NCBI GenBank assembly: GCA_033442325.1
Contig: JAWQFM010000019.1
Span: forward strand, 343,099 to 407,098
Length of the DNA stretch: 64,000 nt
Direction: 5' to 3'
From: Salpingoeca rosetta
Taxonomy: Eukaryota > Protista > Choanoflagellata
The notes beneath the pieces were generated by a model. That model saw nothing but the letters and a program-made list of their open reading frames with translations, did no database searches and was not told where the DNA came from. Both the position numbers and the translations under genes were made by a program. Position 1 is the first letter of the stretch. Every line of letters starts with the position of its first letter. This document shows positions 1 through 3,487 of the stretch, piece by piece.

Positions 1-970
1 CATGTGGTAGTGTGTGTTTTGTGCAAGTGAGTTTTGGACAGAGATGTTGTGCACGATGCCTTGATGAGATTGTCTGATGCGATGTGACATTCACTCACAT
101 CAACACTTTACACACACACACACACACATGCACACACATGCATGCATGTATGCGAATGAACACACGCATACACACACATGATAACCACAAAACATGCACC
201 ATGCAGCCTTCGCGTCAACGATCTTGGACCTGAAGGGGGAAAGGCGATTGGGGAGGCACTGAAGGTGAACACGACGCTGACATCGCTCAAGTGAGTTGTG
301 TTGTTGTGGCCGTGGCCCTGAGCGTGAATATGTGCCGATTCGTGTGCAGGTGCACGTGTGTTTGTGTGGGTGGCAGTGGGCACATTGTTGTGTTGATGTG
401 GTGTTGATGTGTCTGGGTGAGACAGTGATGTGGTGTGTTGACAAGCGTGAGACGATACGACACACCTGTTTTGTTTTATGTGTGTGTGTGTGTGTGAGTG
501 TATGTGAGTGTGCATGTTGTGTAATTGATTTGCACTTGTGGTTCAGTGGCATGGTGATCATGATAGTGAAAGGGGGTGTGGGTGTGTGGATGTGAGTGTT
601 GAGCTAGATAGAGGTTGGTTGATGTTGGTTGACAAGATGTTGTCACACTATGGGGGTTGTGTGTTGTGGAGTAACATAACGTAATTTGTGAATGTGACAT
701 GGTGGTAGTTGTGTGTTTTGTGCAGGTGTGTTTTGGATAGGGATGTGGTGCACGATGCTTTGATGGATTGCCTGATGCGATGTGGCACTCACTCACATCA
801 ACACTTTGCACACACACACATGCATGCATGTATGCGAATGAACACACATACGCACACATGATAACCACAACACATGCACCATGCAGCCTTGACCGCAACG
901 ATCTTGGACCTGAAGGGGGAAAGGCGATTGGGGAGGCACTGAAGGTGAACACGACGCTGACATCGCTCTA
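1..970 (+). repeat. Tandem intron+exon duplication unit (~680 bp period) carrying single-LRR exons
   Basis: Sequence 1-290 aligns with ~698-970, including the intron 3' region (ataaccacaa.acatgcaccatgcag) and the 84-nt exons, which match at 79/84 positions. Confidence 0.92.
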
Positions 971-3487
971 GTAAGTTGTGCGTGGTGACTGTGCCTGTTT
1001 TGCTGCATGCGTCAAGCGGTTTGTTTATGGCACATGTTCTCATGTCACTCCTAATTACTGGAGTGATACACCCTGCAAGTGCCTCGTAGCAATGTGAATG
1101 TTGCCTTGACCTTACTTCAACGCTCATTTCATGTTGAACACTCGCGCAATTTCTCACACCACTCGTCTTATGGTTGTAATTCAACAGCATTGACAGCAAC
1201 TCGATTTCAGGCAGACTTGAATCATCCATCAAGTCTGCCGTTGAACGGAACAAGCAGCGCCAGAAAGAGCTTAAAGCACTTCTTGAGCACGGCTCCGTGC
1301 CGCTGTCCACCGCGAAGGTGTTCGTGTGCGGCCATTACGGCATTGGCAAGACCACCCTCATCGACACACTTCAGTCGGCTCCGACCTTCTTCAACACCAT
1401 GAGACGCCACCGTCGCAAAACGTATGACGAGCCCGATCGCCCAGATCAGCGCACGCCCGGCATTGAGATGCACGATTTTGCACTCAAGAGGGGCAGGTCG
1501 TCTGGCAGCGTCTCCCTCACACCATCGCCAGCTGGCGCAGCAGAAGGGGGCGAAGACTTGTCCAGTCACGAAACAACGCTCCCGCCATGCAAGCTGCGGG
1601 TGTACGACTTTGCTGGGCAGGTGGAGTACCATGTGGTGCACGAGCTGCTGTTTGCGGACCACAACGCCGTCTTCGTCGTGTGCGTGGACCTGTCCAAAGA
1701 CCAAGCCAATGTGGAGGCGTCTGTGCTGTACTGGCTTCGCTTCATCAAGACGCGCCTGCACCAAGCCGTGCACCGCTCAGCGCATCCACCGCACGTGTTC
1801 ATTGTTGGAACCAAGGCAGACAAACCACACGAGCACAACACGCTGGTGGAGACAGCAGCAGAAGCTATACCACATGCTTCTGGTGTCTCTTTGCCGCCAA
1901 TGCAGTTTCCGAGTGGCGATGCGCTGTTGCAGAGCCGACGACTGCAGGAGTGGTTTGGTGACACGATGCGCATCCATCCACATGTGATCCCTCTCAACTG
2001 CCATGACTTGGGCGGTGCCTGCATGCATCACTTGCGCGATTTGCTTCACGCGGCGTGGCTGGAGGTCGTTCAACGAGACATCCAGGTGCCCAAAGTGGTG
2101 GAGTTGATTGGCGAAGGGCTTGCACTGTGCAGAAAGGAGGATGAAGGGCTGTGGCAGTTGCACCGACTGTTGTTCTTCATATCCAAGAACATTGCTGGCA
2201 TTGAAACCATTGAGGGCTGGAACGAAGACGTCTTCTTCAAGGCGCTCAGGTGTGTGTGTGTGTGCTGTGTGTGTGTGCATATGTGCCTGACTTTGGTTGC
2301 TGTACGAACACCTACGACGACCATCGCTCACCCCATCCCCCCCATACCAACACGCTTTAGCTACCTACACGTGCGTGGGGACATTTTGTGGTTCCAGTCC
2401 ATCCCATCCCTTGCCGACCAGATCTTTGTCTCCCCGTCCTGGCTGCTGAGCAAAGTGGTTGGCCCAGCGCTGGCACCGGCCCACTTCCCCGTCCACTTGC
2501 GAGCGACGGAAGGGCGCGTGGTGTTCTCGGAGATGCAGCGCGTGTTTGGGCGGGTGTTGGATCCAGACCTCGTGGTGGACGTGCTGAGCAGCATGCTGCT
2601 GTGCTATGAAGAGGACGCCGCCATGCACGGAAGTGATGATCGTGTGTTCGTGGTGCTACCCCGTCTGGAGGAGAAGCAACAGGAAGCACGCCTTTGGGCC
2701 AAGAAGGACGATTCTCAAGTGTTTGCCGGCCGCCGCCTGCAGATTGCGCAACACCACGGGATGATTTTCCCTCCTGGCGTGTTCCCGCGTGTGCAGTCGC
2801 GCATCGTGCAGTGCTTGAAGCCTGGCACGAGCCTGTGGCAGACAGGGTTCTTTGGCTTGCTCTCCTCTGTTGAGTGCTTGGGCCGTATTGTGAGCGATAC
2901 GTGCATTGATCTGTGGGTCCGCTGCCCTGCCACACACAAGGAGCATGCCTGGCTCGCCCTGGACATGGTGAGCTGTGGCGGTTGCTGTGTTGTGTGTGTT
3001 GTTTGTGTTTATGGGTGTGCGTGAAGGAAAGTAGCGTGCTGCACTGCTGTTCGTTGGTGATGCCCCAAGTCCTCACATTCTCCCGTTCATCCACACACAC
3101 ACACACACACACACACACACACACAAACACACACACACACACACACACACACACACACACACACACACACAACACACACACACACACACACACACACACA
3201 AACACACGCACGCACAGATGCTGGGCGAGGTGGAGGAAGAGATTGAGGGCATTGAGTACGACCATCTCGTGCTGAGCTACGCCCACCTGTCCTCCTACCG
3301 GCCCCATCCAGCCGGATATCTGCTCCAGGACGTAGAGGACGCCGCCACTGCGGGCGAAACGCTCATTTCTCGGATGGTGGACGATGTAACCAGTCCTGGA
3401 AAGAAGGAGCATGTGCGGGACGAGCTGAAAAACCTCCTTCGTGAAGACCTCTTCCTCACGCCTGTGGACAAGGGGTCTGATGTGTGA
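207..3487 (+). CDS. ROCO-family protein (LRR-Roc GTPase-COR), 5' end outside the window
   Basis: Exons 207-290 and 887-970 each encode one 28-aa RI-like LRR. Further exons 1188-2249, 2361-2967 and 3218-3487, all with GT-AG boundaries. Roc motifs GHYGIGKTT (P-loop), RTPGI, DFAGQ and VGTKAD, followed by a COR-like region (YLHVRGDILWF...IFVSPSWL, FPPGVFPRVQ). No kinase domain before the stop. Confidence 0.88.

Follow-up and report, generated by a model that had tools for sequence, protein, structure and literature searches.

Signature of diversifying selection at presumed ligand-facing codons of a recently expanded one-LRR-per-exon array in a predicted Roco gene of the choanoflagellate Salpingoeca rosetta

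The LRR-ROCO genes of the brown algae Ectocarpus and Saccharina encode one leucine-rich repeat (LRR) per phase-2 exon, carry positively selected sites on the repeats' concave face and undergo exon shuffling and alternative splicing (PMC3341825, PMC11378527). They have been proposed as fast-evolving candidate immune receptors (PMC3341825, PMC11378527). In animal, including human, NOD/NLRC genes, one 28-amino-acid LRR of the ribonuclease inhibitor (RI) type is encoded per frame-preserving exon, with the exon border fixed within the β-strand (PMC6642158). Here we describe a predicted Roco gene of Salpingoeca rosetta with an array of such one-repeat exons, which we call cassettes. Its 3′ part lies at the start of a 64,000-nucleotide stretch of contig JAWQFM010000019.1 (assembly GCA_033442325.1; C19:343099-407098), which is referred to as the window and numbered from its first nucleotide. 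S. rosetta is a genetically tractable unicellular holozoan and belongs to the choanoflagellates, the group closest to animals among living organisms. A literature search found no paper that describes choanoflagellate Roco or TIR-LRR-Roc genes of this type. An earlier sequence-only reading of the window had proposed a ROCO gene built from duplicated one-LRR-per-exon cassettes that vary only at ligand-facing positions, and the Ectocarpus gene organisation that it named as a precedent is indeed on record (PMC3341825, PMC11378527). The feature is real, its evolutionary signature is statistically strong, and it is a variant of a known design.

The cassette array is interrupted by an assembly gap of 1015 N (C19:342084-343098), directly after which the window begins; the window holds the 3′ end of the array only. 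Two cassettes were located there, with the boundaries and phase that the sequence-only reading had given them. The exon of cassette c5 occupies positions 207-290, between a cag at 204-206 and a donor gtgagt starting at 291, and that of c6 occupies positions 887-970, between a cag at 884-886 and a donor gtaagt. Both are 84 nt long and of phase 2-2, meaning that the first base is the third of a split codon and the last two bases open the next codon. Each encodes one 28-amino-acid RI-type LRR, translated as L-x-x-N-D-L-G-P-E-G-G-K-A-I-G-E-A-L-K-V-N-T-T-L-T-S-L plus the split codon. The exon border falls within the β-strand, with x5 of the LxxLxLxxN motif supplied by one exon and x7 and x8 by the next. 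As had been read earlier, c5 and c6 differ at 5 of 84 nt (nt 5, 6, 8, 9 and 83), in three codons (CGC/GAC, GTC/CGC and AA|C/TA|C). They belong to a duplicated unit with a start-to-start spacing of 680 bp, and the flanking intron copies have diverged, with 12 of 187 aligned sites differing in addition to indels (~94% alike). The match of a single cassette to the Pfam model LRR_6 was weak, and the tandem repeats of the paralog P0001 reached 80.5 bits; a genome scan with this 24-position model was uninformative.

Beyond the two cassettes visible in the window, extension upstream of the gap revealed four more (c1-c4, starting at C19:339519, 340222, 340915 and 341616), spaced 693-703 bp apart and with acceptor and donor contexts identical in kind to those of c5 and c6. 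The array thus consists of at least six cassettes, arranged as intron-plus-exon units of ~690 bp. With the N run counted, c4 and c5 lie 1605 nt apart, enough to accommodate one or two hidden cassettes. The intron after c4 matches the repeated unit for ~270 nt and then passes into a long poly-T and a C/T-rich stretch that extends up to the gap (L019:6601-6984), which may reflect an insertion or a contig-end problem. Repeat contigs of one public DNA run were collapsed, with a depth of ~166 compared with 17-28 in the flanks, which fits roughly 6-10 copies of the unit. At least six cassettes are assembled, and the true number may be higher.

The x positions of LRRs are known to line the concave face of the repeat solenoid. 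Comparison of the six cassettes identified 10 variable columns, seven of which (nt 5-9 and 83-84) fall in the codons for x7, x8 and x5 of LxxLxLxxN; of the remaining three, one is a synonymous change in a Leu codon and the other two are replacements found in cassette 3 alone. All seven hypervariable nucleotides vary (7/7), with at least 13 substitutions and a mean pairwise difference of 0.657, compared with 3 of 77 nt and 0.0156 in the scaffold. In the introns, 8.6-11.3% of sites were variable and pairwise differences were 1-9%. Variability at the hypervariable sites was significantly higher than in introns (Fisher test, p = 1.3e-7) and scaffold (p = 2.6e-8), also when the five canonical x positions were set in advance (p = 1.3e-4). 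The Jukes-Cantor-corrected ratio of hypervariable to intron rate was ~30. Per codon, the proportion of nonsynonymous differences (pN) was 0.58 at the three concave-face codons, against a proportion of synonymous differences (pS) of 0.026 elsewhere. When 17 cassettes of four close paralogs were compared, pN was highest at the five codons x7, x8, x3, x10 and x5. The contrast is also visible within a single pair: the introns upstream of c4 and c5 differ at 2 of 203 sites, whereas the adjacent hypervariable nucleotides differ at 3 of 5. Introns are 1-9% apart, the three codons are near saturation and their changes are almost all nonsynonymous; such a pattern indicates strong diversifying selection acting on the presumed ligand-binding concave face of the recently expanded exon array.

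The proposed focus of change on the binding-face x positions was thus borne out by six cassettes, in which the x5, x7 and x8 codons lie far above the intron rate. Two further parts of the sequence-only reading fared less well. Its observation that the scaffold carries no silent change is accurate for the c5/c6 pair, but is no surprise in the six cassettes, where ~2.5 variable third positions would be expected at the intron rate and 1 was seen (binomial P = 0.47). Nor does the scaffold have to be called homogenised, since its variability (3/77) is not significantly below that of the introns (p = 0.29), so that recent duplication and ordinary purifying selection suffice.

All exons join in frame into a coding sequence of 3579 nt, or 1193 amino acids with six cassettes. 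The first exon (exon A; 1139 nt, L019:3052-4190) ends in AA|gtgagt, in phase 2. No signal peptide was found in the ~1193-amino-acid protein. The order of domains is a predicted TIR-fold domain, a linker, the RI-type LRR cassettes, a Roc GTPase and a putative COR domain. The parts inside the window are as follows.

1-206, + strand: 3′ part of the intron upstream of c5, a copy of the repeated ~690-bp unit that differs by 1.0% from the c4 upstream intron and by 6.4% from the c6 copy.
207-290, + strand: LRR cassette c5, an 84-nt exon of phase 2-2 with one 28-amino-acid RI-type LRR; x7 x8 are Arg Val and x5 of the next repeat is Asn.
291-886, + strand: intron that separates c5 from c6 and belongs to the repeated unit.
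887-970, + strand: LRR cassette c6, the last of the array, an 84-nt exon of phase 2-2; x7 x8 are Asp Arg and x5 of the next repeat is Tyr.
971-1187, + strand: unique intron between c6 and the Roc exon, with acceptor cag at 1185-1187; TA|C restores the frame.
1188-2249, + strand: exon that, as read from the sequence, opens with the terminal LRR (Y-I-D-S-N-S-I-S-G) and continues through a helical linker and the Roc GTPase (PF08477; LRRK2 Roc) into the start of the putative COR.
2250-2360, + strand: intron of 111 nt, in frame and stop-free; in the relative P0002, which lacks it, the alignment runs on over the junction.
2361-2967, + strand: putative COR exon, COR-A followed by COR-B (COR-A 18.4 bits), conserved at ~20 genome loci.
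3218-3487, + strand: last coding exon, 89 amino acids, with a TGA stop at 3485-3487; collinear with the C-terminus of paralog P0001.

The evidence supports assignment of the gene to the Roco family, as had been proposed from the window. The GTPase motifs G1 (GHYGIGKT, 1330-1353), G3 (DFAGQ, 1606-1620) and G4 (TKAD, 1810-1821) are present, the Roc domain scores 33.9 bits with PF08477, above the Pfam cut-off of 27, and the best sequence match in the PDB, and thus the closest solved relative, is the Roc domain of LRRK2 (E 1.4e-5). The COR matches are weak but consistent with a Roco gene. In this gene, the COR-A score of 18.4 bits falls short of the 35.3-bit cut-off, and COR-B has an E of 0.048. 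All seven family members tested yielded a COR-A match (best E 6e-7), and five of the seven also yielded COR-B, correctly placed after COR-A. A search of PDB sequences with the COR profile returned no match. A Foldseek search with an AlphaFold 2 (AF2) model of Roc-COR, itself of low confidence (predicted local distance difference test, pLDDT, 58), ranked LRRK1, the Roco protein of C. tepidum, LRRK2 and the archaeal RocCOR of M. barkeri first, over ~600 columns. Between the P-loop (G1) and switch II (G3), the Roc domain contains a low-complexity insert of ~65 residues (window 1390-1590) that is rich in Arg, Pro and Ser, has a pLDDT below 50 and is kept in close paralogs.

The N-terminal domain is predicted to adopt a flavodoxin-like TIR fold, based on profile comparison and structure modelling. 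The first ~160 residues of this gene gave no Pfam match at E 0.1, and TIR_2 scored 14.8 bits here, below its cut-off of 28. A profile built from 21 paralogous copies of the domain matched the TIR domains of Roq1 (E 5e-4), RUN1 and SARM1, and 18 of the 21 paralog domains matched TIR_2 (best E 2.9e-7). The AF2 model made on the 21-copy alignment had a pLDDT of 87.8, and its top Foldseek matches were almost all TIR domains (SARM1, plant RPP1/RUN1/RPS4, MyD88, ThsB and AbTir), with an E of 4e-5 and template modelling (TM) scores of 0.56/0.66 for SARM1; a few nucleoside 2′-deoxyribosyltransferases appeared from rank 14. In the helix that follows strand C, the motif S-T-F-Q-E-L contains a candidate Glu, which sits at the position of the SARM1 glutamate as judged by offset and is present in most but not all paralogs. 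For the linker (exon A residues 170-379), a Pfam search returned no match, and a SAM-like reading was not confirmed. Membership in the NLR/STAND families was rejected, as no NACHT or NB-ARC domain was found; the only NACHT match was at the level of the P-loop (E 0.088), and the NTPase is Roc.

A search of the 55.4-Mb genome with the first, Roc and COR exons recovered at least seven loci with the same order of TIR, cassettes, Roc and COR on one strand, including two gap-free close paralogs (C19:106-111 kb and C2:396-402 kb). The LRR exons of all seven loci are 84 nt long and of phase 2-2, so that the symmetric one-LRR-per-exon cassette is a property of the whole family. The ten cassettes of the C1 locus, like the repeats of other older paralogs, have diverged along their whole length, whereas those of this gene and of the paralog on C17 are near-identical. 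Hence the exon-per-LRR design is old, and the expansions are recent and gene-specific. The C17 paralog, PTSG_06523, was found at 86% identity by a word-index protein search that, owing to its length window, yielded few relatives, and its public gene model splices the cassettes at exactly the boundaries inferred for the present gene. Its array (C17:478324-489853) is broken by a 5.2-kb N gap and includes three diverged cassettes as well as two pairs whose members agree in their variable residues. The COR exon of PTSG_06523 was not found in the genome search and is skipped in the public model; it may be lost or hidden in a gap.

A DNA search of the genome with the 84-nt cassette gave 15 matches, all within four intact paralogous genes. 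The cassettes cluster by gene, with gene-specific synonymous markers (AAGGTGAACACG in the present gene, G1, where the paralog G2 has AAAGTCAACACC), and no shuffling of cassettes between genes was seen. Cassette c3 and one G2 cassette both have Tyr-Ser at x7 x8, which may be due to chance. Somatic assembly of the kind known as variable lymphocyte receptor (VLR)-like was rejected, since no banks of donor cassettes were found and 15 of 15 matches lie inside the four intact genes. The TIR_2/DUF4062-like N-terminal domain itself occurs at ~30 loci genome-wide (e.g. C14:1321110-1321529, C4:1718150-1718566 and C35:355600-356070), and in the public relative P0005 it is fused to WD40 repeats. This domain seems to serve as an output module common to different sensors.

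We consider it probable that these observations reflect a recent expansion of the array in a TIR-LRR-Roc-COR gene, combined with diversifying selection on concave-face codons, and that the product is a cytosolic recognition receptor. The intron-plus-exon unit of ~690 bp has expanded in tandem recently, and rapid replacement has since affected the three concave-face codons and almost nothing else. The concave face of the LRRs would act as a sensor that binds a variable ligand, Roc-COR could serve as a nucleotide-dependent switch or a means of dimerisation, and output might come from the TIR domain, via assembly or NAD-derived signalling. Unequal recombination within the long and similar introns (~600 bp) could add or remove repeats in frame. 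Since the exon border splits the β-strand, a crossover in an intron would also yield new pairings of x5 with x7/x8.

The same sequences could also have arisen from old cassettes that evolve in concert, with conversion or unequal crossing-over keeping introns and scaffold alike and selection sparing the differences in the binding codons. In that case, the cassettes would be older than the low divergence of their introns suggests. The gene-specific synonymous markers of G1 and G2, the exact duplicate cassettes in G2 and the breaks of the assembly in both arrays all fit such a process. Linked selection against conversion should, however, leave a gradient of divergence around the hypervariable codons, and no such halo was present in the introns beside them; the scaffold next to these codons is identical, and variability in the first 50 nucleotides of the introns is about that of the remainder. 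Concerted evolution also still needs selection for diversity at the identical codons, and differs from recent expansion in its dynamics rather than its meaning. We regard it as an unlikely account.

A rate excess that is both extreme and sharply bounded might instead point to a targeted mutational or templated process, such as local hypermutation or copy-choice from donor cassettes. In one DNA run, a collapsed contig carried G instead of A at L019:4428, which is the hypervariable nt 9 of c1 and changes Asp to Gly at x8. This variant represents either an unassembled cassette or a culture difference. The genome-wide DNA search placed the cassette in four paralogous genes only, with no orphan donor arrays, all types of base change were present and no associated enzyme was evident. 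A targeted process thus appears very improbable.

We give equally little credence to an assembly artefact, in which repeat copies were mis-joined or collapsed, or a TIR-LRR and an LRR-Roc-COR part from different genes were joined across the gap. Such an artefact would account for the 1015-N gap between c4 and c5, the poly-T and C/T-rich end of the intron before it, and the repeat contigs collapsed to a depth of ~166 versus 17-28. Against it, both the hypervariable codons and the intron differences are particular to each cassette, and the gap-free paralogs C19:106-111 kb and C2:396-402 kb show the same TIR, cassettes, Roc and COR order on one strand. Furthermore, an independent run (X1) is DNA, since its contigs cover introns, and the majority of its listed contig pieces match the region without any difference.

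Neutral drift after a recent tandem exon duplication, with the variable positions as unconstrained surface residues, is compatible with the scaffold conservation and the very low expression, but was rejected as highly unlikely because unconstrained sites cannot outpace introns (0.66 per site versus ~0.05, and 3/5 versus 2/203 for c4 and c5) and because every exon retains an intact reading frame and intact splice sites.

Reads from RNA were scarce, with 14-41 reads per run on 5.9 kb in three runs (X18-X20). Those of X20 on the Roc exon derive from a paralog, as 9 of 9 carry C>T at L019:9673 and share a common loose end at 9701. First mates mapped to the + strand over the cassette and intron region (L019:4297-8630) and to the - strand on the first exon and Roc exon (4100-4296 and 9025-10000). 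This strand switch, seen in few reads only, could stem from antisense or repeat-derived transcripts.

Several points weigh against recent expansion and selection in a cytosolic receptor gene. No splice joint of this gene reached 3 reads in the three RNA runs, and transcription was at most very low under the sampled conditions. Selection was deduced solely from paralogous repeats of one genome, the statistics rest on six cassettes with an assembly gap within the array, and gene conversion could distort the intron clock. The putative TIR and COR assignments stay under the Pfam cut-offs for this gene itself. The role of a cytosolic recognition receptor is one that we infer, and LRRs in Roco proteins such as LRRK2 also have non-immune roles.

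The array might furthermore diversify on a short time scale, through unequal recombination or local mutation, so that S. rosetta lineages or cultures carry different versions of the receptor. We find this quite unlikely. The hints in its favour are the assembly breaks in both arrays, the sharply bounded ~30-fold excess and the variant base in c1, none of which is decisive. If it is true, a germline-encoded and rapidly reshuffled recognition repertoire would exist in the closest relatives of animals. Independently of time scale, the family appears to combine a Roco GTPase switch with an RI-type LRR sensor, similar in build to the LRRs of animal NOD/NLRC proteins, and with an output domain of TIR fold. 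With its very clean hypervariability signature at ligand-facing codons, it offers a candidate system in which pre-metazoan intracellular recognition can be tested. It would also show that the combination of one LRR per exon and a hypervariable face arose or was kept in holozoans, besides brown algae.

In the remainder of the window, a tail-to-tail neighbour on the minus strand (~3881-7500) displays the motifs GGWVRDKLLG...DIDI and RRDFTINALYYN over several exons and, read by eye, looks like a gene of the tRNA nucleotidyltransferase (CCA-adding) or poly(A) polymerase family. A GAT/GAC repeat of ~130 nt at 8700-8830 would read as poly-Asp in one frame, and most of the introns are filled with CA/TG microsatellites. 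Five more N runs were located at 12936-13733, 42390-42489, 46058-46357, 57082-57181 and 63192-63291.

Compared with known systems, the S. rosetta gene shares the predicted LRR-Roc-COR core with LRRK2/LRRK1 and prokaryotic Roco proteins. It is without kinase, ankyrin, armadillo and WD40 domains, and has a predicted TIR-fold N-terminus and a long low-complexity insert between G1 and G3 of Roc. With plant TIR-NB-LRR proteins it has in common a predicted N-terminal TIR fold, hypervariable solvent-exposed x residues in LxxLxLxxN, tandem duplication and diversifying selection; the plant proteins use an NB-ARC NTPase, whereas the S. rosetta gene has Roc-COR and the domain order TIR-LRR-NTPase. The animal NOD/NLRC genes show the same exon design and, as far as the predicted domains suggest, the same logic of a cytosolic LRR sensor, an NTPase switch and a signalling domain. 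Their switch is a NACHT STAND ATPase, in contrast to the Ras-like Roc-COR GTPase of S. rosetta, in which the LRRs are N-terminal to the switch. The intron position is alike in place in NOD/NLRC and S. rosetta, and this likeness is either homologous or convergent.

The closest system is found in the LRR-ROCO genes of brown algae. As in those genes, the predicted order is LRR-Roc-COR, each LRR has a short exon of its own with phase-2 introns, and the exons form tandem in-frame arrays; an excess of replacement changes at the concave β-sheet face likewise occurs in both. The brown-algal exons measure 72 nt and encode 24-amino-acid 'typical' LRRs, whereas those of S. rosetta measure 84 nt and encode 28-amino-acid RI-type LRRs. 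The brown-algal family comprises hundreds of exons, with between-locus shuffling and documented alternative splicing; in S. rosetta, only within-gene expansion was seen. Unlike its brown-algal counterparts, the S. rosetta gene carries a predicted N-terminal TIR-fold domain and belongs to a holozoan.

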